Source: Monocercomonoides exilis PA203
Taxonomy: Eukaryota; Protista; Preaxostyla
Reading direction: 5' to 3'
Length of the DNA: 64,000 nt
Assembly (NCBI GenBank): GCA_001643675.2
Contig: LSRY02000066.1
Location: 62,001-126,000 of the forward strand
Below, piece by piece: positions 901 through 18,433 of the stretch (position 1 is its first letter; each line of letters begins with the position of its first letter). A program made the position numbers and the translations under genes. Below the pieces are notes generated by a model that saw only the letters and a list, made by a program, of their open reading frames with translations, was not told the origin of the DNA and ran no database searches.

Positions 901-1770
901 TTAGCCTTTTTTGTTGTTTTGAACAGACTCTTTTGCGTTTGCATTCTTGTCTGATTCTGTTTGATAGTCTTTCTTTTGAAGCATTTCAACACTTTCTTGA
1001 ACTTCGTTGTTTTCGTTTTCTTTCTTTTTCATCGAAGCACTTTGTTTTGTTTCAGTGTCATTCGCATCATCATCATATGCTCCTTCCTTTTCATTCACAT
1101 CGCTTTCTGAGCTGTCAGTTGATTCGTCATCTGATAGAATTCCCCCAACATTCACCACATTCCCATAGCTCATCAGCTTCAGAATATTCTTATCATCTGC
1201 ATTGTCCTCTTCAGACAGCCAGCCGTCCCCTGAGCTTATGTTCCGTCAGTCTTCATCATCGAATTCTTCTCAACTTCTTCGGAACACTGTCAGAATCTTT
1301 CTTAGCTTCTTTCACTCCCTGCCCATCTTCATCTCTCTTGTTTTGCCTGTAGAGCTTATCCAACACTTTATAAAGTTCTTTTCTTCACTTTTCAATCTTT
1401 CACACAATGATTTTGTTCTGTGACATTTCATATTTCAGATACACTTCCTAATAAAAAATGAATATTGATAATTTGATAATAATTTCATATCACACATTAA
1501 TAGAAATACAATGACTGGATTTTATAAATTTTTCAAATTAATAATAAAAACAAACTTTGTCAAAAATGAACAAGAATTAATATAGTCACATTGAATGGTC
1601 TTTCTGTTTGCACCAGCAAAAATAGTCGATGTGTCAAATAGAAAGACTGGTTTCTGAACAAATAAATCAAAATTCTTGTATTTGTGAAAAATAACAACGA
1701 TTTGTTCCAAACCTTTTTGCACTTTTGTCAGTACAAGTCAAACGTTCTCACATATTAAATATATAGAATG
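901..1770 (-). pseudogene. Relic of a repeated intron-containing gene overlapping repeat R copy 1
   Basis: Frame ENV*LVLTKVQKGLEQ...CSFLTKF, a putative intron, then EVYLKYEMSQNKIIV*KIEK*RKELYKVLDKLY...RRIR**RLTEHKL, continuing in frame into ORF 901-1173. Homologous relics at 5460-5690 and 14460-14910 differ partly at synonymous positions. Confidence 0.55.
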
Positions 1771-2140
1771 ACTGTAAAATAATAAGAAAAATCTTCGAAG
1801 ACGGTGCATGGGAAACAATTCATTTCGCACAACACTTCATCCCAAATAAAAAATATGTTAAAAAACAAATTATTACCAACTTTTTCCACTAACAGATTTT
1901 CAAAAAAAGCATCAGACATGTTTATTATCGTTATTTATTCACATTGAGCAAAATAGATCATGGTATTCTTAATGGCGCCATTAATAATAATTTGTATTTT
2001 TTATGATCAAAAATTTCAAAAATTTTTCAAAATTTTTTATTTTTGTTTCATTTAATTTGTGAATATTATTGCTTTGTTAATGCAAACATGTCATCAGAAA
2101 TTAGTTTTGATTTTTTTAATGTTTGATTAAAGGTGAAAAA
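1310..2140 (-). repeat. Repeat R, copy 1 (inverted relative to copies 2 and 3)
   Basis: Reverse complement of 1584-2126 reads identical to 14096-14638, with diverged similarity continuing to about 1310/14910. Contains the palindrome TTAATGGCGCCATTAA. Confidence 0.95.
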
Positions 2141-2243
2141 AATTAATTTTATTCAAAGAAATATTTTATTGGTATTTTTTTTATTAAAAATGTTAATTAA
2201 AAATGAAAAAAAAATTACAAAAAAAAAAAAAAAAAATTAATAT

Positions 2244-4715
2244 TTATTCAATAAGTTGATAAAATGTTAATCCTGACTTCCATCCTTCCAGTGATAAATT
2301 TTTCCAATACTGATTCCATTTATCAAATGCTAGCAGTGAAACAACCTCATCGTCGCATTCAAAGAAAATGCTTTTCTCTTCAATCAAATGCTTTTTATCC
2401 TTCACAACTGCAATGAAATGTCCATCTTTGAATTTTGATGTTGAATGAATCACAGTTCCACAAAGCTGATATTTTGCTGCAATCATATTATTGTCAGAGA
2501 AGAATTTCAGGGAAGTTTTTGCTTTCAAGGGATCAAAAAAGCAGATATCAAAAGGGCCATTTCCTTTTTCAGCAACAAACAGTTGAGTTGGAGGGGGATT
2601 GACTGATGAAGGTGTCAGATTGTTATGAAACACACACAAAACACAGGGAAAAGCATCAAGCCTGATCCATTTCAATTCAATTCTTCCAGTTGAACATTTT
2701 CCACACACCTGTTTCATTTGATCCTCCTCCTCTTTCACGACAGAAAAATAAGAATTTAAACCTTCAACAATATCAGCGTTTGATATTGGCACCTCCAACG
2801 TGATTCCCCTTGGCTTTGAAGTCAATTGATTACAAGACTGACATTTCATAAACTTGTGACTATGAAGTTGAAACTTTTTAATAACACCATCATCCTCCTC
2901 CGACAATAACTCCAGAAATTTTTCATATGTTGAAAGAGAACCTTTGGGTTCCATCAATGGTCCAAAATTATTCTCATACATCTGAATCATTCTCTTCGTT
3001 CCCCAAAAGAATTTCTGAAAATCACACCCACTCAAACATTGCAGAACCATTTGAAGCGATTGTCGATCTGTTAAGTTTCTTTTGCTCGTAAAGCTCCTTC
3101 CCAAATCCAGAGATGCAAAACATTGACATAATGAACTGAATGAACAAGTCTTTCCCAGATTCCTCAATCCTCTTTTCGAAATTTTGTATTTGTAAACACA
3201 AGATCTTGAACCCACATCACCATCCATCACATGCATTGATAAACAGTCGATAAATCTCTCAATTGGTGCAAACATCAGATAAACTGTGTCAGTTCTTGAA
3301 GGGTTTTTTGAATTGGATTCCATATCGTCATCTTCATTTGAAGATATTTTCTTTTTGCTGTGAAAGAGTGTTGCAAACTCTGACTCAAAGGGTGATAAAG
3401 TTGACAAAGTTAAAGAGGGAGAGGAAGGGGAAGAAGAAGAAGAAGAGGAGGAGGAGGAGGAAGAGGAAGAGGAAGAGGAAGAAGAAGAAGAAGAAGGAGA
3501 AGAAGAAGGAGAAGAAGGAGAGGAGTGAGATGGAGGAAAAGGAGAAGGGGAGGATGAAGAAAAGGAGAGGAAGAGGAAGAGGAGGATGAGAGAGAGGAAG
3601 GAGAGGAGTGAGATGGAGGAGAAGGAGAAGGAGAAGGAGAAGGAGAAGGAGAAGGAGAAGAAGATAAAGAGGAAGATGAAGAGGGGGAAGCAGGAAAGGA
3701 AGCAGATGAGAATGCGGATGAAATAGTTGAAGGATGAATATTCGAAAGAGTTAGTGGGAAAGAAGAAGATGGAAATGATGGAGAGGAAGAAGATTTAAAT
3801 GAAGATGGAGAAGCCATATTCAAAGGATGGAAAGAGGATAAATTTGAAGCAGAAGGGAAGGATGAGGAAGAAAATGAAGTCGATGGGAATGAGGAGGAGG
3901 AAGGAGATGAGAATGATGGGAAAGGTGAAGAAGATGATGGAATTGATTTTTCTGATGGAGGAAAAGCAGAAAACATAAAAGGAGATGGAAAGGAGAGAGG
4001 GTTGATTGAGGAAGATGAGGATGATGATAATGTTGAAGTTGATGGTGATAATGAAGATGATTTCGGAGTGTAATTGAGTGAAATGCAATCTTCTGAATCT
4101 TCCATATCCATTTCTATTGTTTCAATTTTTTCATTTTCGGCTCCAAGATATCCAAAATATGATTTTGAAGAATCACGTTGAGAAGAACGTTGTTTCCTTT
4201 TCATTGACGGTGTTCTGTCTGTTGAAATTTCTTTCTTTTGATCGAAAAAGGATGCTCGAAAAGGCGCTGGTTTAATTACAAACCCAAACTCTTGGCTTAG
4301 TGTCTGCTGAGAGAATTCTTTTGTCAGAATCAATAGCATTTCACTTTGTAATTCATAGGAGAGGCTATTGAAAACATGACTCAGCTCTTTTATGGTTCGT
4401 TTCAGTGGATCTTCATATTGCAAAATAAAATAATAATAATAATAATTATTTATAAATAAAAAAAGAATATTTAAAAAAACATTGAATAAAGAAAAATTAC
4501 ATAAATAAAACATTGTTTAAGAAAGACACGCCATTAAATGATTTTAATAAACTTTCGAAAAGTTGCCTTCCTACTTGTGTTTGTTGGAAAAACATAAATG
4601 AAACCATTTCTGCGTGAGAGAGTGACATTTTTTGAAAAAAATTTGTGAGTTGGACCATATCCTTCTGCAGGCTTCTAAATTCCAATCCATTATGAACCCT
4701 TTTAGCTGACAACAT
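2244..4715 (-). CDS. Transposase-derived N-terminal domain, Ser-rich linker and ubiquitin-specific protease (peptidase C19) domain; no transposase core; one apparent frameshift near 3562
   Basis: Exon 1 4715-4532, intron 4531-4411 (GC-AG), exon 2 4410-2244. Cys box GLRNLGKTCSFSSLCQCF, Zn-ribbon pairs KCQSC and CGKC, YQLCGTVIH, His box GHFIAVVK, FFECDD, LTFYQ. The N-terminus aligns with the 9239 gene. Confidence 0.8.
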
Positions 4716-5139
4716 TGTCGATAAACCGATCCAGTCAATGAAATTGCAATATATGGGAATTTTTTTATGAGAAATGGAACTCATAAAACAATAAAAAAAA
4801 ATAATAAAAATCAAATTCAACTAAATATGTTAAATTTCTGACCAATAAAAAATTGAACATAAAAAAATAAACAATGTTTATCTATTTTTGAACAAATATA
4901 AAATAAGATACGATAAAAAAAATATTCAAAGTTTAATGAAAATTTCTAAATTTTTTTCATTGAGGAAAAAATAATTAACAACTCATATTGCTTTCTCATT
5001 ATTTGATAATTAAAAAATAAATTTCAAATACTAAAAAAAAATATTTAAATTTCTAATAAATATTATTTTTATTAATTTTGATATCACATTAAAAAAAAGT
5101 TTTAATAATTAATTAACAACATTCATATGACTTTTTTTA

Positions 5140-5712
5140 CATTAATAAAGCAATAATATTCACAAATTAAATGAAACAAAAATAAAAAATTTTGAAAAAT
5201 TTTTGAAATTTTTGATCATAAAAAATACAAATTATTATTAATGGCGCCATTAAGAATACCATGATCTATTTTGCTCAATGTGAATAAATAACGATAATAA
5301 ACATGTCTGATGCTTTTTTTGAAAATCTGTTAGTGGAAAAAGTTGGTAATAATTTGTTTTTTAACATATTTTTTATTTGGGATGAAGTGTTGTGCGAAAT
5401 GAATTGTTTCCCATGCACCGTCTTCGAAGATTTTTCTTATTATTTTACAGTCATTCTATATATTTAATATGTGAGAACGTCTGACTTGTAATGACAAAGC
5501 TGTATAAAAGGTTTGTAACAAATCGTTGTTATTTTTCATTAATATAAGAATTTTGACCTATTTATTTAGAAACTGGTAATTTTGTTTGGCACATAGACAA
5601 TTTTTGCTGATACAAACAGAAAGACCATTCAATGTGACTATATTAATTCTTGTTCATTTTTGACAAAGTTTGTTTTTATTATCAATATACAAAATACTCA
5701 AAAATCAATTAT
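5140..5712 (+). repeat. Repeat R, copy 2
   Basis: 5147-5480 is identical to 14147-14480 (offset exactly 9000). 5481-5611 is diverged, and about 5613-5681 matches copy 1 instead. Confidence 0.95.
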
Positions 5713-5949
5713 TGTCTTTTTTTGAGTGACTGAAGTGATGACAAGAAGATGAATGAAGCTATAAAACATAATATAAATAAATGCATCATTTCGAGAAAAA
5801 TTAGAAAGGCTTATTGAAATGTTTCGTGTTGTTTGCCTTTTCATTAACGATTATATATTTTTTTTTCCAACTTTTGAGTTTATTCAAATAAAGATGTTCA
5901 TTCCTGTTTTTTTTCAATTAAATAATGTTCAACCTCAATTCCATCATTC

Positions 5950-8000
5950 ATTCAGAACCAACTGATGAGAGTTCTCGACAACAATGTGTATTTCTCTCTT
6001 GTCTCTTCAGCATCCTCCTCCTCTTCTTCTTCCCCTTCTTCTTTATTGACTGATCTGTCAATTTGACCGCTTAACGGAGCCATTTTTGCAAGAACACACG
6101 AAAAAATCAAATACTTTTTTCGCCCAGTTCTTCGCATGTTGAACACATGTAGTTCTGTATTTGTGGTTGAAACAGACAATCAAAAAACAAGTGGATGCTT
6201 GGAGAAATTTACTGATGCTGGAGACATCAACAGACCATCGCAGTCAGTTCGCATTGCTCCCGCCTGTTTCTTTAATTTTCGGATAAAGAAGAAGAGCAAG
6301 ATACCAGCGAAATGTGAAAAATTGCATCAACAACAGCACAACTGCATTGCATGTGGTGGCTGGCCTGTGGATCCTTCCTTCTGCAACTGTTGTGGATGTG
6401 CACCGCCACAACACGGAGAAGGCGATTCTATGGAAAGAACTAGCTTTGATCCAGTTGAACCACGCGTTTGCCCACGAGCTCGCTCCAGCCGACGAGACAT
6501 TCAACCGCTACGATGGGCTGCTCTACACAGAGGCTGGCATGCGCTTACTGCCGGATCTGTTGCATTTTCCTTTCAATTTAGGTACCAATCCGCTGCTATA
6601 TAAAGACACAGAGGTGTTTGTGTGTGTGTGCAAAGCAACATGAAAATATCCTATTGATTGGCAAACACACAATTTTACAAATTTTAATGTGAGAGTGGAG
6701 TATTGAGTGGAGGAAGGAAATATGAGGAAGGGGATGATGCATCAGATGGGAGGGATGGGTCTGGGTGGAAATGGATGTGGAGGAGCAAGTGGAGGAGAAG
6801 GAGGAGGATAAAATGATAACAATGGAGGAGATGGAAGTTGTGGAAATCAAGGAGAAAACAAATGAGAATGAATATGTCCCATTTCAATAGATCCACGCGA
6901 GGGACATCTTGAAGCCGGAGAAGAACGTGTGAATAGATTTTCATGTGACAGCCACAGCAAGTGTATTCATCAAGCTTCGTTCATCTGAAAGCATCTGGGA
7001 GGAGGGAAGCACGCGGTGAAGAAGATTGCATGCCAGATGCTAATTCAAATCAAAGCACGTGTTGGGTTTGAGAGCGAGCGAGAAGAAGAAGAAACGGAAA
7101 TGCATTTACTGGAATAAATAACCCATCGGCGAGGTGGATGCACCAATGCAGTCGATCGTGATGCGGAACAAAGGTGGGACGAGCATCGACAACAGACTCG
7201 ATCTGACTGATGAAGAGCGGCTGAGTTTTTCCACATCTGAATATTCACTGTTTGAATAACTTTTCACAACAGGGATTGTGCAAGCGCATGAAATGTGGAA
7301 AACAAATTGTTTCTTCCGTCCGCTGATGCAAAGAGGTTATTTGGAAAGGATTCCGATCAATCTGGGAAGCAGGTACAGCTCGATGAGTGTGATGAACGCG
7401 AATGTTGGAATAGGAGGAGCAGTTTGAGGAGATGGGAATGTGAATGGAACGAATCATTCACCATCATCGAACAATGGAATAGTGATGGGAATTGGTGGAG
7501 CACAAGGAGGAGCACAAGGAGCAGCCGGAGGAGGAAGTGATGGAACAGAAGGCATCACACACGCGGAAACAGTTCTGCAAGCGCTGCTGGCGGGCGACGG
7601 TTTCATCGCGAAGGAAGGAGCAGAGCCACTTGTGGATGAGAAAAAGACAACTATTCCAGCTCCTCTTTCTCCTTTGCCTAGCAAGCTGTGCTTATTGTCA
7701 CATGAGCAAATTGGCTTTGGGAGTGTGGCAGATGGGAGCATCGAGCGGAGGCTGGTGTGTCTGGTGTGTCTGCGTGCGAGGAGCATCCTGCATTGCAGAA
7801 GAGGGCATGTGAGAAAGGAGAGAAGAGAGAAATTATATTAGATACAGAAGAGAGTCGTCCACTGATCAAGTCGGATGCTTCGATAATTTGGCCGATTGGA
7901 GGAAAGAGGACAAAAGGAGAGAAATGCGTATGTGTGTTGTGCAGTCGCATGTTCTTAAAGGCTGTTCAAGTTGAAGAAATTTCATTTCAATGAATTATCA
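5950..8000. other. Patchwork of short, GC-richer exon-like fragments in both orientations
   Basis: Protein-like segments end at GT donor-like sites, e.g. 6314-6612 (...LHFPFNLGTNPLLYKDTE|gtgttt) and 7440-7763 (...SKLCLLSHEQIGFGSVADGSIERRLVCL|gtgtgt). No complete gene can be built. Confidence 0.45.
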
Positions 8001-8675
8001 TTATCGTTATCTTCACATTTTCGATCTCAAATTGTTATTATCTTTTTCAAATGTGAATGAAGTCGGTGGTGAAATTACAAAAAAAGCGAAGCAGAAATGG
8101 ATGATTATTGGCATTAGGAGAAAAAAGTGATCAAAAAGAGGATATATGTGTTTTGATTGTGATCGATGAATAATTATGTGAAAAAGAAAATAAAAGAAGA
8201 TTTGTGAAATGAAACAAAGAAAAAATTAAAATTGTTTATTTATAGTTATTGTTTCATCTCGGATATTTCAAAAAGAAAATAAATAAATAATTGTTGATGT
8301 TCAAACAATAATCAAACTTATTATTTTTATTTGTTCATCAGTTAAACAAATAATCTCTATTCAACACATCTGTGCAGTATTTAAAAATTTATATATCTCT
8401 CTTTTTTTTATTATTATTTGCTCATTTCAGAATTTTTTATTTAGAAATAATTTTTTTTATTTCTATTTGTTATCAAAACTAATTTATTTTAATGGTTCGT
8501 TTCATTTTTTTGATTTATTTTGCATGAAAAAAAATATTTAATAATGAAAACGAACTTTAACAAAAAAATGAGTTAATCAATTCGAATTGAAGAAAAATAT
8601 ATATATATATTCGAAGGTTTATTAATTTTTTATTTCATTTTTTTTTAAAAAATTAAAAAAATTCCAATTCACATA

Positions 8676-9108
8676 GTTCAAAAACATCTGCATCATTTTA
8701 TTTTTCCAAATAAAAATAATCACAAAAATGACGACAAGCTCAAATGAGAAGTGTGATCAGTCACTAACAGATATTTGAAAAAATGAGTATGATTAATCAT
8801 TTCGATGCAGATGATCAGTATTTGACAAAAACAAGAAGGAAAAATTTTGCAAGAGGGAATGTTATTGGAAAAAAAAGAAACACAATGATAGATCAAAATT
8901 TCGATCATTCTTTTTCAAATAACACTCCCTCTTGCAAAATTTTTCCTTCTTGTTTTTGTCAAATACTGATCATCTGCATCGAAATGATTAATCATACTCA
9001 TTTTTTCAAATATCTGTTAGTGACTGATCAAACTTCTCATTTGAGCTTGTCGTCATTTTTGTGATTATTTTTATTTGGAAAAATAAAATGATGCAGATGT
9101 TTTTGAAC
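8676..9108. repeat. 433-bp near-perfect palindrome (foldback) upstream of the transposase gene
   Basis: GTTCAAAAACATCTGCATC... pairs with ...GATGCAGATGTTTTTGAAC. Arms are about 200 bp with very few mismatches, the loop is about 30 bp, and there is no clear TSD. Confidence 0.95.
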
Positions 9109-9238
9109 AATATAAAATTATTAGTCATTTTCGAAAAAATATTTATTTCTAAAAAAACAAAAAATAAAGAAAAATCCCGAGTTGTCAATTTTTTATTAAT
9201 TGATAATAATTCCATAATAAATTGTAATAATCACTAAA

Positions 9239-12200
9239 ATGTCATTTTCAAAACAGGAGTCAACTCTAAATTCACGATGCAACGTTCTATGGAAAGAAAT
9301 ACAACGCATCGGTGGAGATGACGTTGATTCATTGCTCGTCTATTTGTTTTACAACTACAGAAAATCATCTTCAGTAATTAATGATTTACTGAAGTCCTTG
9401 AATGGTTTGGACTTCAAAATTTTTTGATTGTTAATAACTTTAATTTATCTATTATTATATTCATTTATTATTAATATTTATTTTTTTGTTATTTAAAAAA
9501 CTTAGAATATTACGAAATACTTCTGAAAGATCTCTCTGTTGTGTACAAGTACGCACAATTACACACGCAAACGATGATCCTACAAGCACTGACGCGCAAC
9601 GCATCATTATCTGAGCTTCTGGACTATGGATTTGACATTACTGAAGGAAAGTATAATTATGCAAAACAAACTCTTACAAAAAACCAAGGATTTTTAATAC
9701 CAGCACAATTGCCTCACCCACCATCATGTAAAAGTGGTTTGTATTAAATATTATAATGATTTCTTTTTTTACTGTTTTTTTATTTTTTCAATTATTTTTT
9801 TTTTTTAAGGTCTTAATGAACAAGATTGGGAAAAGGGCAACAATTGGATGTTGGCCCATTCCACAGAAGCATCAACGTCATTGCAATCAGCCAAGAAAAA
9901 ACCAAAAAAGGTTCCAGATTACGAGCAGTTCATTGAGGAATCTGCATGGGATGATATCATAATTACAGAAAAAAATAATACAAACAAAAAACTATCTTCA
10001 TCATCGAAAAAGACAAATCAAAGTTACAACAACGCCAAGCTCATTCCATCTGTGAAACCTTCTTCTACAAATAATACACCTTCTCAAACAGTAAACAATC
10101 CAATCAGCACTCCACTTCGTGCTGAAAGAAAGACAATAAGAATTAAACAAAAAAATTCATTTCATCATCGTCATTCTTCTCCATCACTGATTCCTATTCA
10201 CAAACTTTACAAAGAAAAAACTTCATCATCATCTTCATCATCATCATCTTCTTCTTCTTCTTCATCTTCTTCTTCTTCATCATCATCCTCATCATTTTCA
10301 TCATCATCATCATCCTCATCCTCATCATCATCATCCTCATCATCATCATCCTCATCATCCTCATCATCATCATCCTCATCATCATCATCAATAAGAAAGA
10401 AAAAGAAAGAAATAGATAATACTCCTCCAACAGACAAAGTTTCATCATCCTTTAGCAACGAAAATATGTGGATTAGTGGTCAATTGATTGAATATGCCAC
10501 TTCTCCCACTCTTATTCCTCCACTGGCATTTCAAAATCTTCTCTCAACATTTCCAAAAAATAATGACATTTCAATTACTCCATCACAATCACCTCAATCA
10601 AATCAAAACGAATTAACAAACAATAATAGATCATTGAAAAACATTTCAAATAACAACACAATGAATCTTCATCCTTCTAATCCGTTAACATCTCCATTTC
10701 CTTCATCACATTCACAAAACTTAACAAACATAACAAACACTAGTTTTAAAGGATTAATCAATTTAGGCAACACATGTTATCTTGCCTCTCTTCTTCAGTG
10801 TTTTTCTTCAATCACTTCACAAAAACCATCAATCATTTCGAAAACACGCTCAAAACAAACATTATCATTTCAAATGATGAGTATTTGCAATCAAATCCTC
10901 AAAGATGGAAAAAAAGTACATTCATGGATCCCATCAATTGTTAGCAAATGGGAAAATTTTTGCAGATACGGAAGCAAGCAGCAGCAGAATGTGTCAGAGG
11001 CATTCGATAATCTTCATAGACTTTTCGAAAAAGATGGATTGATAAAGAAAGATTGCTTCTGTCCTATTATAATTTCTCATTTCAAATGTTTTAAATGTCA
11101 AAAACTCACATCACACATCGACAACATCAACAATAGCATAATTATCAATTCTTCATCAACTCACAATGGTTTGTCTTCTTTGTTTTCAACTGAAATACAA
11201 GATGGGAAAAATTGTGTTTATTGTGAAGAGTGCAAAGAAAAATGCTGCACTGCAAGGTGGGAAGAAATGATATCATTTCCTGAGGTACTTGCCCTCTCCC
11301 ATGAATGTACTGATCCTGCAAGTTCTCCACCTTCTCGAACACATCTTATCGAGACTGATATGTCGAACAAACGTTCATTTTGCAAAGGATATGCAAATGA
11401 AAAAGATTCAACATTTCACAACAACAATAAAGAAACAACATTCTATCATTTCATTGGTCAAGTTCTTCACAAACAGTTTGATAACAGTAATGGTCATTAC
11501 ATTGCTGTTGTGGAAAGAAAGAAAGGAATTAGAAAGATGTGGATCACCTGTAACGATGATGATATAAAACAATTTGATAGTGACAATTGGACTAAGACTT
11601 GGAAAGAACTTTACGCACAGGGTTACACTCCTTCACTTTCATTCTACGTAAAAGAAAACTCACTATCTACGCATCCAACAATTCAATTTGGTGGTTCCTC
11701 TATTTCTTCCTCCTCTTCTCAATCTTTAAATATCAACAACACAAACACAGACACAACTCCATCATCATCGTTTATCACACCACCACATCATTCTTCTTCC
11801 ATTCCACAACTTTCTTCATCAATAACAACTAACTATGGATTGGAAGCACTAAAAGAAAGAAGAAAGAAAACGGGCATCTTTTCTCCCAATGAAAAGAGAT
11901 TAATCTTCAAGCCCAAGACTAAATTATGGAAAGAGTTTTCCGAAGAAACAAATATTAAAGTATCATTATCACACTTCTACAAACTCACCACAAACTTTTC
12001 CAAAGCAAAAAGGCGCACAGATCTCTGTGGAATGTGCGAGAAACTCAACTATCTGGAAAACAAACTGAAGTCATCTCAAAACAAAAATGGACTTTCTTCT
12101 GCCGAGTTTCATACACTCAAACTTCTTCGTCAGCATCGACTTGTTGCAGAAATGCAACGAAAACATTATCAATCAACTGTTGACAATCTGAAAGAGGGAG

Positions 12201-13135
12201 AAGCAGTCTTCGTCTTCGACTTTAAAGAAAAATGGAAACTCCCGATCAGAAAGAACCAACTTCAACAAGAATTCTTTAATTATCAACAGGTTTCTCAATT
12301 CACAATCATCTCTCTTCAAAAAATTAATAATCAACTAATTAAAAGAACATTCAACTTCTTCTCCGACTGCCTCTCAAATGATCACAGATTTGTTATTGAG
12401 TGTCTGGAATCTGTGATCAAAAGACACTTCTTCTCAGACACTCACACTTTTAAGTTCTTCTGCGATTCGGGCCCACACAACCGAAATCGCTTCCTTCTTC
12501 ACTTCATCCTCTCCAAACAATCAAAACTTCTTAAAAAGAAAAATACACAACTCAATTACTTCGCTGAGCACCACGGAAAGAATATATGTGATAGTGAATT
12601 TGGTGCATTAGTTAATTCAATCGACAACAATCTATCAACTGAACACATCACTACACTTCATGACTTAATCAACTTCTTCGAAAACAATATGAATGTTTCA
12701 ACATCTGTTTCATCATCATCACAATTGAATATTTTTGAATCATCCTCATCAAACAACTCCCCATCGTCATCATCTATCAAGGAGTGTGTGCATGAGAGGT
12801 ACTTTGAAGAGTATGTACCATCTCAGCAAATTTCATGGCCATCACTGTCAGTCCCTCACATGAAGGACTATTTATACTTTGAGCGCAAGGGCTCATTTGT
12901 CTGCGCATCTGCTGTTGGATATCTTCCTCAACGCTCTCTGGTTGCCCTCGAATCTTCGACAATGAAAGAAAAGGTTCAACGTTCAAGAAAGTCATTTCAC
13001 TCTGATATCACATCATCTAACTCTTCTCTTCTTTCTCAATCTTCTCAAGATCTTCTTTCAAGAAGATTTGATCTTCTTCTTAACTCTTCATCTTTAAATG
13101 AATCTCAAAATTGTATTAATAGTGTCCCTTTTTAA
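9239..13135 (+). CDS. Sola-like (Sola2/Sola3-type) DDD transposase with an internal USP (peptidase C19) deubiquitinase domain, about 1240 aa, 3 exons
   Basis: Exons 9239-9404, 9506-9736 and 9810-13135 join in frame via GT-AG introns. USP motifs at about 10745-11655: GLINLGNTCYLASLLQCF, QQQNVSEAF, KCFKC/YCEEC, GHYIAVV, WITCNDD, LSFYVK. Transposase motifs at about 11890-12950: KLWKEF...KVSLSHFYKL...RTDLCGMC, VFDFKEKW, FFSDCLSND, FFCDSGPHNRN, NYFAEHHGKNICDSEFG. Confidence 0.85.
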
Positions 13136-13142
13136 GAAACTA

Positions 13143-13274
13143 GTTGTTGTGTATGCTTAGCTAGCACTCTATCGGAAGGGTGCTGGACATGACTGTTCGT
13201 ATTAGATATTGCAGCCTTCGGGCTGCAATATCCGGACCTGGATACGACGAACAGCCTCCCAGGTACACAATAGT
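13143..13274 (+). ncRNA. Candidate structured RNA element directly after the transposase stop codon
   Basis: GC-rich island with a closing stem 13143-53/13264-74 (G-U pairs), hairpin 13161-86, stem 13193-200/13247-54, a perfect 12-bp hairpin with cUUCGg loop 13205-32, and a crossing pair ACCTGG (13236-41)/CCAGGT (13259-64). Confidence 0.55.
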
Positions 13275-14079
13275 TAGAATCCGATTGTTTTCTTACTGTT
13301 TCTGTCCCTATAATGTCCCTATTTGCACTTGGTAATAGTCCCGAAATTTATTTATGTATATCTTAATAGAGATTCATTTTTTGATGGGTGTTATGAAGAG
13401 TTTCAATGATTTTTGGATTAGATTTCAGGAAAGGGGAATAGCTGAGAGTGTGAAGTGATGTTTCATCACTGTGTCTGCCTTTTTTCTCTGTTGAATTTGA
13501 TCTTTTTGAGTTAGGACAAGAGAAATATCAGAAAGGGTGGAGTAGGTAGAAAACAAAGGATAAACAGTCAAGTTTGTTTTTACACCTAAAGTATTTGTAT
13601 TCTTTTGTGTTTTGAATTGACTATGATACCATGTATTTGTTGATATAGTAATGCTTTTTTTTGAATCTTTTATTGTTCATATGAATTGATATTGAATTGA
13701 CTGTCGGGAAATGTTTTAATGATGATATAGTAAAAATATATTCCTTTGAGAGTGATGCAACAAAAAAAGAAACTTATATGTTGCTTTCAATATTTAAGCT
13801 GATTAATACAATGAAGTGCTGTTGTTATTTGTGTGTTATTTTGTTTTTTGATTGTTATCGAATTAACAATGAATTTATTTTTATGTTTTTCTCATCACTG
13901 AATATTCATCAACCGTTGTAGTTACTCAACAATGAAGATATTGATATCAAAACATTTATATATTGAATAGAACAATAATTATAAACATGTTCATTCAAAA
14001 ACAAAACATTTTTAAGTGTTTAATTTTTCAAAGATATTTTTCTCATTTGAAATGAAAATTCAATGAAAAATAAAAAAAC

Positions 14080-14910
14080 ATATTTTCACCATTATTCAAA
14101 CATTAAAAAAATCAAAACTAATTTCTGATGACATGTTTGCATTAACAAAGCAATAATATTCACAAATTAAATGAAACAAAAATAAAAAATTTTGAAAAAT
14201 TTTTGAAATTTTTGATCATAAAAAATACAAATTATTATTAATGGCGCCATTAAGAATACCATGATCTATTTTGCTCAATGTGAATAAATAACGATAATAA
14301 ACATGTCTGATGCTTTTTTTGAAAATCTGTTAGTGGAAAAAGTTGGTAATAATTTGTTTTTTAACATATTTTTTATTTGGGATGAAGTGTTGTGCGAAAT
14401 GAATTGTTTCCCATGCACCGTCTTCGAAGATTTTTCTTATTATTTTACAGTCATTCTATATATTTAATATGTGAGAACGTTTGACTTGTACTGACAAAAG
14501 TGCAAAAAGGTTTGGAACAAATCGTTGTTATTTTTCACAAATACAAGAATTTTGATTTATTTGTTCAGAAACCAGTCTTTCTATTTGACACATCGACTAT
14601 TTTTGCTGGTGCAAACAGAAAGACCATTCAATGTGACTTTGATAATTATTATTCATTTTTAACAAAGTTTGTTTTTATTATCAATTTGCAAAATACTAAA
14701 AAATCAATTTTTTTGCTGCTTTGAATGCATTCTGTAAATTATTATCAATATATCTGATTATTTTTTTATCAGGAAGTGAATCGGAAATATGAAATGTTTC
14801 AAAACAAAAACATTGTGTGAAAGATTGAAAAGTCAAGAAAAGAACTATATAAAGTACTGGATAAGTTCCGCAGACAGAGCAAGAAAGATGAAGAATAGCA
14901 GGGAGTGAAG
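14080..14910 (+). repeat. Repeat R, copy 3
   Basis: 543 bp identical, inverted, to copy 1. ORF-track entries 1522-1722(-) and 14500-14724(+) share their first 47 aa. Confidence 0.95.
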
Positions 14911-17900
14911 AATGGTGAGGGAGATAATGATAAAGCTTAACAGGAAACTGGAAGAGATGAAAACTAAATTGACGGAAATGAAGATGAGCAAGATGATTCT
15001 TGACCTGAAGAGGAGAGAGGAATTGTGAAGAAAGTTCTATTAGAATCGAAAGCAGTAAGCGCAAGAGTGTATAGGAGAAGGGTGGAATGAAGAAGGGTAG
15101 ACGAGAAGAGAATTATTTTATGGAATGAGAACAAAGACATGAAGACAAGCAAGGAGAAGTCTCAATTCAATGACTGCGGGTTGAAAGACAGTGAAAGAAA
15201 GCGGAAACAATTATCTAAGAACTACATGGAATTCTGTTGGACGACTTTAAGGAAGAGCATGAAAAGGAATGGGCATAGGCGTATGGAGACATCTTTGTTC
15301 AACCAGTATTTAAAAATCATTTCGCTTTCAACTGAGAAACAAAGGAAAATGAAGCTGAAATTGATTGAAGCAGCGCAGAGCAGGAAAAGGAAGAGGAGAG
15401 GGAAGATTAGGGTGAACATGGAAAAGAAGCTGGACAAGAGGAGGGAGGAGCATTATTAAGCTCATAAGGTTATGAAGGAGGAAGAGAAAGTGAAAAAAGA
15501 ATTGAACATAAGAATTCTTTTCAAAATTGGAAAAGATGGAACATCAAAAAGAAACGTTGATTGAATGGTCCATTTGGAGATATAAGATAAAAGTTGAACA
15601 TCTTTTGTTATTTATTCTTCAAAGAATAACAATTGCCTTGAAAAGTCGTTTCAGAGGAAGAATTAAAATGTTCAATTGTCAAAAAGCAGGAAGCAGAAGC
15701 AGAAGGGGAGAATGCAACGAGGTCAAACATAAGAGGAAATGAGCAATTATGTATCGAAGACAAGGAGGAAAAAGAGAGATGGAAAAGCGAGCTGAACTGC
15801 AGCATGTCTGAAGCATCAAAATCAGCTTCAAGAAAAAAAAAAGATATTCTCGTGACATTTCTTCAGTAATTTCATCGTCATTATCTTCTTCTTCATCGAG
15901 CAACTTGAAGTTTTTCCGGGATCCAAAGGATGAATCCAAAATGACAGCGAAAGGGAAGAAATGCAGCAAAGATGACATGGTTCCATTCCAAGCAGACGAA
16001 GATTATTTCTTCTTGTTAAAAAACACAACAACAAACAAAGCATTAAGCCCATCTATTTCTCAATCACAGGCATCGTCTTCATCTTCCCCTCAGATTTCTT
16101 CATTGATTTCTCCACAAAGTGCCAGCAAACACACAAAGGTTCCACGAAGCAGCCTTCTTGTGATGATGGAAGGGATAAAGAGGAGGAAAGAGGAGAAGAA
16201 GAACACAGATTTTCTCTTGCTGTTTTTATCGCTGGTACCTGAAATGATACTGACTATGATGCCAGTTGGCGATATTTCGCTTGTAGATGGCAAGTGGTTT
16301 GAGGAGGAAGTGAAAGATGTGGATGTGGTGAGAGGAGTGGAAGAGGAGGAGAACGAAAGGAAGAAGGAGAGAAAGGAGTACTTGTTGAAATCGAAGAAGA
16401 AAACAAACGAAAAACTGAGTTGAATGAAAGAAAGGAAGCTGAGAGAAGAAAAAGAAAGAGAATCATTTAGAATAAACAGATCATCTTTTCACAAACAAAA
16501 TGTCATTACGCAACGTTAGTTGGAATAAATCAGACTCTTCAGTCAACGCTTCAATCAACTGGATCAGCATCCTTCTCTTTTTCTCCTTCCTCCTCTTCCT
16601 TATCATCATCATATCCTTCTTCTCTATCCTGACATATTCCATCTGATTACAATCATATTGATTATGCTTCACATCCTTCAACAGCATCACTTTCACCTCC
16701 TTTTTCAAAGTTATGTATATCTCCATCTTCCTCAAATACCTCAACTTTCACAAGTCAAATATTGTATCCCGTTTCTTCTTCGTCATTGTGCTTTCCTGAG
16801 CTAAAATTGTCGACTATTCCAAGCTTCATCGAACGAACTGAGTTAGAGAAAGCGATACAGACGAAGATGAGAAGATGCAGAAGAATGAGACAGAGAAGCT
16901 GGGAGAGGAGCTGCTGGAAGAAGAGAAGGAAAACTCGGAGAAAGATCGGGAAAAGCTCGAAGACGAGCAAAAGAAGGCGCTGGAGCAGGTTGAGAAGAAG
17001 AAAGAGGCGTTTGTTTCGTATCTGAAAAAGATGAAGATTGAAAGCGAATAAAACTTTAAAAGTGGAGCAAAGCAGAAGAAGGTGTGGATGAAGGAGCATT
17101 TCGAATAGCCTATTGTTGTTTGTGTAATGAAGATGCTGTTAATTTGAGATGATCTATCTTTTGATCGGTAGGCAGTTTATTTTGGAAGCTGTGCAGATGT
17201 GTTTCCTAATAAAAGCTCATTTTTGACTGTGGAAGAAGGATAAGGAAACAATTCAGAAAACTTGTCATTTTCAAAAGAACAACAAAAGAAGAAGAGGAAA
17301 AAAGAAAAGAAAAATGATGAGGAAGTTAGAAACAAAAAAAGGATACGCTGATGATGAAGAAACTTTCGAGTTGATTTTCCTGAGAGAAAAGAAGAAGAAA
17401 GGAGAGAATTGAAGAGAGAAAAAAGATGAACTCTGTTTCAAGTTTCAATGGCGAGATCTGTGATGATAAGATACAAGACGGAGTTTTTTATAATTGTCGA
17501 ACTGGAATATGATTTAAAATATTTTGAGGGAAGAGAGATTGCTGTTGGAGAAAAAGTTGCATAAATTGGGAAGAGCACAAAGAGCGGGTTTAAAGAGGAG
17601 TAGATTTTCTCTTCGAAAACAATGGAGCTTGGAGTTGAGGTTCAGATGCATCTCTGTTGGAGAAAAGAGTCAGGAGATAAAAGCAAGAGATCCGAAAAGG
17701 ATGGAGAAGAGGGAAGACCGTGCAAAAGAGTTTGAATAATGTGAAAAGATGTGACGGAAATTGAGAAATGAACATCAGCGAGCTGGCAGAGGGAAAGCCA
17801 ACAAAAACAAGATTTTTCTAAACAGATCCAATTCGAAAGTTGGAAAGGCAACGCTGGCGGTTGATGTGCAGGACGGCTGTGGAGGTGGGTCCCAGGTGGA

Positions 17901-18433
17901 CAAGCGCGGAGCCGAACTGGCAGATAGAGAAGCATATATTTTGTCAGTAGAATATCAGCTTGGAACAGCAGAAAATGATAAAGTGGAGGCGTGAGGTTGA
18001 AGTTGATGCACAACATTGCAACTCTTCACTCACACCGCTGACAAGCGCAAGCCGGATATCGCCAGACTTATGAGAGCATAATGTTTGTGAAGTTGGTTGA
18101 TTTCAATTCGAATTCTGCTCTGGGTTTGTCGAATACAGCAAATGAGAGAAGCTTAAACACCTCAAAGGGATGAAAGCAAGAGGAATGCGAGTTTGGCAAA
18201 AGTGGATGGAGAATCGATGAGGATAAATGGCTGTGACTAGGATACTGAGGCGAAAGTGCAATGATCCAGATACACACTCCCTTTTTGCTGCCTCAGCAGT
18301 CACATATGAAAGGTGTGATTGGGAAGTTCGTATTGAAAAGGATCATCGAGCTAAAAGTGGATCAGCTGAAAGAGAAACAATGAAAGTGGGACTCAATGAA
18401 CAAGGAATGCGATTCCTCAGAGGTGGATTATAG
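14910..18433. other. Patchwork of decayed coding fragments in both orientations
   Basis: Short protein-like frames with stops and strand switches, e.g. + strand about 16800-17050 AKIVDYSKLHRTN*VRESDTDEDEKMQK...SYLKKMKIESE* and minus strand about 17530-18110. Confidence 0.4.

Follow-up and report, generated by a model that had tools for sequence, protein, structure and literature searches.

A Sola2-like transposase gene of Monocercomonoides exilis that carries a ubiquitin-specific protease domain between its N-terminal domain and its core

The Sola superfamily of DNA transposons, reportedly described by Bao, Jurka, Kapitonov and Jurka in 2009, has a 4-bp target-site duplication as its defining trait. 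Sola elements are 2 to over 15 kb long, with terminal inverted repeats of 11 to 1124 bp (PMC10741241). The RNase H cores of their transposases are given in supplement 5 of Majorek et al., 2014 (PMC3985635), with Sola2 as RNase H cluster E.12; Pfam contains no Sola model (PMC5751038). In other transposons, OTU and Ulp1 domains occur in Ginger1, Mutator-like elements (MULEs) and Helitrons (Bao et al., 2010; PMC2836005), Helentrons encode VTD deubiquitinases that are active (Erven et al., 2022; PMC9741609), and UCH domains are stably carried in Helentron-like elements (HELIANO; PMC11417382). The Trichomonas vaginalis protein XP_001314237.1 joins a transposase_11 domain (IS5-like, PF01609) to Peptidase C19 (cited in Bao et al., 2010 after Gladyshev and Arkhipova, 2009). 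Here we analyze a gene on the plus strand, at 9239-13135, of a 64,000-nucleotide stretch of the genome of Monocercomonoides exilis PA203, an amitochondriate protist (contig LSRY02000066.1, positions 62,001 to 126,000; the window). It encodes a transposase of Sola2 likeness with a ubiquitin-specific protease (USP) inside it, and probably serves as the transposase gene of a Sola2-like cut-and-paste DNA transposon family that is young and present in high copy number in M. exilis.

A first-pass annotation of this DNA, made from the letters alone, knew of no described Sola-USP fusion. In our literature search, too, no Sola-type transposase with a USP came up, and neither did this M. exilis family. 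Fusions of USP/C19 domains with other transposases have been reported, in Trichomonas and Helentrons, and only the combination of Sola2 with an internal USP appears to be undescribed. The T. vaginalis protein and the M. exilis one both combine a C19 deubiquitinase with a DDE/D transposase in a metamonad host, but the transposase is IS5/Harbinger-like in the former and Sola-like in the latter, and evidence of selection or of a multi-family radiation is given for M. exilis and not there. Helentron and HLE2 elements (with UCH, OTU or VTD domains; PMC11417382, PMC9741609) resemble the M. exilis family in stably carrying a transposon-encoded deubiquitinase at a fixed position. Their protease lies beside a rolling-circle RepHel protein, whereas that of M. 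exilis lies inside a DDD transposase; ubiquitin-chain cleavage by the Helentron VTD domains has been shown biochemically. Ginger1, with a C-terminal OTU or Ulp1, and Ulp1-bearing MULEs (PMC2836005) also pair a cut-and-paste transposase with a ubiquitin/SUMO cysteine protease, which is OTU or C48 and terminal there but C19 and internal here. With Sola2 itself, the M. exilis protein shares a DDD triad on a compact RNase H-like fold, five sequence blocks in the same order, and long terminal inverted repeats. It alone has about 650 amino acids (two linkers and the USP) between N-terminal domain and core; Sola's 4-bp target-site duplication was not found at the M. exilis copies examined; and the family is distant, the window protein falling below the threshold for the Pfam family DUF7869 that some relatives reach.

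The gene has three exons, about 1240 codons when spliced, and the exons were analyzed one at a time in every search. Residue numbers refer to the ATG-defined open reading frame (ORF) at 9848..13135 on the plus strand, which has 1095 amino acids and no internal stop; exon 3 begins 38 nucleotides ahead of its first ATG. The features of the gene are as follows.

9239..9404, plus strand: exon 1, with the ATG at 9239; 55 codons plus 1 base; first part of the N-terminal domain
9405..9505, plus strand: intron 1, 101 nucleotides, GT..AG, phase 1, with an in-frame stop at 9425-9427
9506..9736, plus strand: exon 2, N-terminal motif conserved across the Sola2-like transposase family; contains MILQALTRNASLSELLDYGFDITEGKYNYAKQ
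9737..9809, plus strand: intron 2, 73 nucleotides, GT..AG, phase 1
9810..13135, plus strand: exon 3, with linker, USP, linker, transposase core and C-tail
10205..10400, plus strand: poly-serine tract (TCN triplets) in linker 1, of different length between copies
10751..11584, plus strand: USP/UCH (peptidase C19) domain, amino acids 302-579, Pfam PF00443
10775-10777, plus strand: predicted catalytic Cys310, in the Cys box
11495-11497, plus strand: predicted catalytic His550, in the His box
12017..12037, plus strand: TDLCGMC motif (xDxCxxC), amino acid 724, pre-core motif
12200..12631, plus strand: predicted RNase H-like catalytic core with the DDD triad, from the AlphaFold2 model and family alignments
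12218-12220, plus strand: D791, in FDFKE (amino acid 790)
12464-12466, plus strand: D873, in CDSGPH (amino acid 872)
12590-12592, plus strand: D915, in HHGKNICD (amino acid 908)

Amino acids 302-579 match the Pfam UCH family (PF00443) with an E-value of 6.9e-15 and 55.8 bits, above the gathering threshold of 23.9, and cover positions 2-241 of the 254 in the profile. Aligned with USP12 (5k16), the domain has the Cys box GLINLGNTCY, two zinc-ribbon CxxC pairs, the His box GHYIA and NDDD; the solved USPs in the PDB that it matches in sequence are USP12, USP8, USP34, USP14, USP21 and USP46. Judged by these alignments, the USP is complete, and its predicted catalytic Cys, His and Asp residues and its zinc ribbon are intact. 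The first-pass annotation had described an uninterrupted ORF with a complete USP (Cys box, Zn-ribbon, His box and NDD), and both statements hold.

The last 456 amino acids match no Pfam family, but a search of 1.8 billion representative proteins gives 658 homologues at E<=0.001. The motifs from which a transposase had initially been proposed (TDLCGMC, VFDF, CDSG and HHGKNICD) were all found again, and they are invariant in the family alignments of 28 and 43 sequences: both Cys of xDxCxxC in either alignment, its Asp in the smaller one and nearly so (>=90%) in the larger, and, in both, the Asp of DFKE, the D and H of DxGPHF, and HGK...D. The core was modeled with AlphaFold2 from the family alignment, a single-sequence model having reached a predicted local distance difference test score (pLDDT) of only 40.5. 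The resulting model has a pLDDT of 85.9 and the RNase H-like order b1 b2 b3 a1 b4 a2 b5 a3, in which D791 sits on b1, D873 where b4 ends, and D915 on the final helix. Foldseek places the IstA, Hermes and Mos1 transposases at the top of its ranking, and VIA-align gives Z scores of 10-11.7 over about 140 residues to the integrase cores of prototype foamy virus (PFV), human immunodeficiency virus (HIV) and Rous sarcoma virus (RSV) and to Mos1, Metnase and IstA. The RNase H-like fold on which the first-pass reading depended is present in the model, which supports the assignment of the C-terminal part as a DDD transposase.

To which transposase family does the core belong? We compared it by eye with the cores of Sola1-1_AP, Sola2-1_HM and Sola3-1_HM (Majorek et al., 2014, supplement 5). 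The consensus of the M. exilis family reads DFKEN .. Q..FY .. FLS..L.HD .. W.D.GPHFRN .. NFF.E.HGK..CD, and the core of Sola2-1_HM reads DFAEN .. QSYHW .. FISDDITHD .. FTDGCAGQYKN .. NFFATSHG (PMC3985635). Five blocks are collinear between the two, DFxEN, Q..[FH][WY], SD...HD, D[GS]...[FY][KR]N and NFF...HGK, and likewise with the E.12 cores of sea urchin; the resemblance to Sola1-1_AP (..GHT..) and Sola3-1_HM (..RGKD) is poorer. This visual comparison supports the published Sola2 core as the best match, in line with the Sola2-type label of the first-pass annotation. The window core does not match Pfam DUF7869 (PF25273) even at E<=10. Three relatives (P0128, P0158 and P0140) pass that model with 29-36 bits against 26, and the nearest ESM-Atlas clusters are DUF7869 (score 0.96).

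The position of the USP was assessed with the exon-2 peptide alone. Searches with phmmer and jackhmmer match it to the N-termini of relatives from other organisms, and iteration within the fetched set places the exon-2 motif in 48 such proteins. From the end of this motif to xDxCxxC, 43 relatives have 38-241 amino acids (median 85), as against about 737 here. About 650 of these, comprising the Ser-rich linker, the USP and the second linker, split modules that are neighbors in all other relatives measured; the segments HSTEAS and KRLI are about 670 amino acids apart, the distance originally estimated. In 20 long relatives from other organisms, Pfam finds neither a USP nor any other protease, and a search for long relatives with a USP returned M. 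exilis proteins only. Because the N-terminal motif and the core, adjacent in relatives, lie so far apart here, the comparison supports the view that the USP is an insertion relative to the family architecture, between N-terminal domain and core, as the first-pass annotation had proposed. An end-to-end fusion of two genes by chance read-through was also considered and rejected: the USP has the N-terminal domain on its upstream side and the core on its downstream side.

The three-exon model is consistent across copies. Neither of the small exons shows an indel or a change of length or frame in 10 further copies; the GT donor of exon 1 is kept in 11 of 11 copies, and in the 10 others GT and AG are kept at all sites but one. 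Both introns share the donor G|GTTTG. Indels among copies are confined to the introns, which diverge much faster than the exons (in L029/L030, identity is 83% in exon 1 and 48-52% in intron 1). Downstream of the gene, the first ~150 nucleotides past the stop (13136-13300) are as conserved as the coding core (95% in 20 copies), and identity drops to 55-70% by 14200 in these 20 copies, a sample biased by the choice of copies.

We searched the M. exilis genome (82,301,135 bases in 101 contigs) with the C-terminal 456 amino acids. The published Oxford Nanopore Technologies (ONT) assembly of strain PA203 consists of 46% repeats, with 35% unclassified (PMC8767320). Counting genomic copies, as the first-pass annotation had suggested, gave at least 93 scored copies of 478 candidates, at 87-98% amino acid identity. 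The core is free of stops in 63 of the 93, and roughly half of the copies belong to open frames of 1050 amino acids or more. Proteins 88-100% identical to the elements are M. exilis MONOS_* models. Among the public models, P0001, P0002, P0013, P0166, P0174, P0178 and P0183-P0186 are fragments of 250-905 amino acids named 'uncharacterized protein MONOS_*', and P0001 splices the catalytic core out.

Thirteen intact copies, picked by C-terminal similarity, were used to calculate the ratio of nonsynonymous to synonymous substitution rates (dN/dS), which is 0.047 for the core, 0.20 for the USP and 0.27-0.36 for the linkers. The Cys box, His box, zinc-ribbon Cys and DDD motifs are retained in 13 of 13. 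By these ratios the USP is under purifying selection.

The genome also has further families, with cores 38-58% identical to P0003. Four of five that were examined have a Pfam UCH match ahead of the core within one ORF; in the fifth, the USP is degenerate and shows up as a weak BLASTP match only. Among the four, the USP is 39% and the core 61% identical; between these four and the window family, the values are 22-27% and 41-43%. Because USP identity tracks core identity between families, the data fit a single, early acquisition of the USP, which would then have co-diverged with the core through at least six families.

Repeats around the gene, and a second USP gene, occupy the following positions in the window; the repeats carry no strand assignment.

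14069..14909: right-hand terminal repeat unit (R'), with its inner ~65 bp at about 14100-14165
1311..2153: R' again, in inverted orientation and 93% identical, some 7 kb upstream of the gene
5136..5728: R, a third copy of the repeat, in direct orientation
2244..4715, minus strand: transposase-less paralog with N-terminal domain and USP, between the repeats 1311-2153 and 5136-5728

In other copies (L022, L024, L025 and L026), the sequence of R' borders the gene on both sides as inverted repeats of 438-597 bp that are 95-99% identical; those of L029 are 198 bp long and 99% identical. The inner ~65 bp are common to all subfamilies, and the outer parts are subfamily-specific, of two types. At 8668-9116 of the window, the place of the left inverted repeat in other copies is occupied by a near-perfect palindrome with 209-nucleotide arms, 97% complementary, and a 31-nucleotide spacer. 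The window copy has this palindrome, and other sequence, in common with the C2 and C39 copies; the palindrome looks like a foldback insertion or one resembling a miniature inverted-repeat transposable element (MITE).

To the right, the repeat extends into a 2.27-kb unit (14083-16358) that is found elsewhere alone or inverted to the left of other copies and has recurrent break points at 14236, 14726, 14909, 15093 and 16358. Pfam finds no match in the neighboring ORFs 6136-6603, 7440-7841, 14696-15064, 15905-16423 and 17642-18016. L022 and L024 (G000 C27 and C12) have both of their outside junction sequences in common but opposite orientations of the gene, the outcome to be expected of recombination between the 600-bp inverted repeats that flips the interior. 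In L041-L046 (G000 C42:55000-86000, C45:561000-592000 and C24), the surroundings of class-A copies recur on different contigs as blocks of at least 28 kb with 88-96% identity; about 12 kb upstream, and in opposite orientation, these contain another, divergent Sola-USP ORF.

The paralog at 2244-4715 has the same two N-terminal exon peptides and ends right past the USP. Its USP matches Pfam UCH (E-value 6.8e-11) and is 29% identical to that of the element (tblastn). At least seven copies exist at 93-98% identity, five of them within about 5-7 kb of a Sola-USP copy, in either orientation; the paralog may be a non-autonomous partner or regulator. Copies of the L029 type have a USP-only ORF of 361-401 amino acids about 3 kb upstream of the Sola-USP gene (G000 C58:1536550-1537491, C36:1465369-1466310, C80:596558-597499, C59:340791-341732 and C9:367439-368368), about 27% identical to the USP of the 2244-4715 paralog as query. 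This linked gene is a second case, hinting at two-gene composites.

Several observations weigh against a simple transposon. At the flanks of seven copies, no direct repeat (target-site duplication) was found at the ends of the inverted repeats, and the outer ends of the 13.6-kb composite in the window show no duplication either. Of the ends that the first-pass annotation had proposed to define, the inverted repeats were found in other copies and the target-site duplication was not. The window copy has the right-hand repeat and lacks the left one next to the gene; because no matching left repeat is at the usual place, it is probably not mobile on its own. No unambiguous terminus was seen, as homology between copies runs past the ends of the inverted repeats, and the flanks beyond these are themselves repeated (searches with the L029 and L025 flanks). 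In at least 10 loci, class-A copies have 0.5 kb or more of flank in common on either side, with no empty site seen; two loci (C42 and C45) have at least 28 kb in common, and about 15 kb is common to the window, C2 and C39 copies. Since at least 10 copies agree in sequence outside the inverted repeats and empty sites were not seen, what moves or is duplicated is a larger or composite unit; such units, or block duplication, may account for part of the copies counted. In addition, the Sola2 assignment is visual, not statistical, and splicing is supported by comparison among copies only. Synonymous divergence is uneven along the gene (dS 0.08-0.78), which points to recombination between copies, and the copies behind the dN/dS ratios were chosen by similarity at the C-terminus.

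One explanation of the shared flanks is that the gene belongs to a domesticated or merely duplicated host family, in which the USP-transposase fusion was amplified as large segmental blocks, transposition was lost and the inverted repeats are relics. The flanks common to at least 10 loci, the missing empty site and target-site duplication, and the 15 kb shared with C2 and C39 would all be accounted for, as would the C42 and C45 blocks, whose identity of 88-92% equals the element's own divergence. Amplification as host blocks sits poorly, however, with the existence of several flank classes (window type, L022/L024, L025-28, L029 and L030) and with arms that are 97-99% identical within one copy when copies differ from one another by 5-20%. 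Stops in 30 of 93 copies are expected of decaying transposon copies, several diverged families stand side by side, and the core is very strongly constrained (dN/dS 0.047). We regard a host family of this kind as improbable.

Two further explanations concern the USP, and to each we give very little weight. The domain might be passenger DNA, a captured fragment of a host USP gene carried without serving the transposon; gene capture is common in DNA transposons, captured domains are found in Helitron-like elements (PMC11417382), and dN/dS is about four times higher for the USP than for the core. A passenger would not be expected to share the transposase's reading frame and to separate two parts that adjoin one another in every other relative, nor to keep its predicted catalytic Cys, His and zinc-ribbon residues in 13 of 13 copies, nor to persist and co-diverge in six families whose cores are just 41-63% identical. 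Alternatively, the ORF might yield, through transcription or processing, two products, an N-terminal-domain-USP protein and a transposase, with no single working fusion. The transposase-less gene, which is a multi-copy unit of its own, the long low-complexity linkers that border the USP and the public gene models, which are fragments of 250-900 amino acids, could be read in this way. Yet about half of the copies have no stop, frameshift or conserved splice signal between the parts, the public models P0002, P0013 and P0001 cross the USP-transposase junction, and a core alone would miss the conserved N-terminal module of the family.

If the gene encodes the transposase of a Sola2-like transposon family, as we favor, the DDD core would carry out excision and integration at the long terminal inverted repeats, and the USP, being part of the transposase, would work for the element in cis. 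Its most likely task would be to strip ubiquitin from the transposase itself and so prevent proteasomal turnover; alternatively, it could act on ubiquitinated chromatin or repair factors at donor and target sites. In either role it would resemble the proteases (OTU, Ulp1 and VTD) found in other DNA transposons. A stronger version of this reading, which we offer tentatively and think rather unlikely to hold in full, is that the USP is a working, integral module of a Sola-type cut-and-paste transposase, the first of the USP class there, acquired once and indispensable through at least six families. The elements would then work as composites of two genes, in which the divergently placed, transposase-less gene for N-terminal domain and USP would bind the same ends and regulate or assist transposition.

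The finding gives an identity to part of the 35% of the M. exilis genome listed as 'unclassified repeats' (PMC8767320), and many 'uncharacterized protein MONOS_*' models are fragments of the USP-bearing transposase. DNA transposons that are not related to one another repeatedly carry proteases of the ubiquitin and SUMO systems: MULEs and Ginger1 have Ulp1, and Helitron-type elements have OTU and VTD. The M. exilis family, with its canonical USP, the internal position of this domain, purifying selection and co-divergence, dozens of intact copies and a separate derivative of N-terminal domain and USP, is a clean natural experiment on why transposons need a deubiquitinase, and makes the question directly testable. 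If the stronger version is true, removal of ubiquitin would be a required step of transposition, or of the evasion of host control, in M. exilis.

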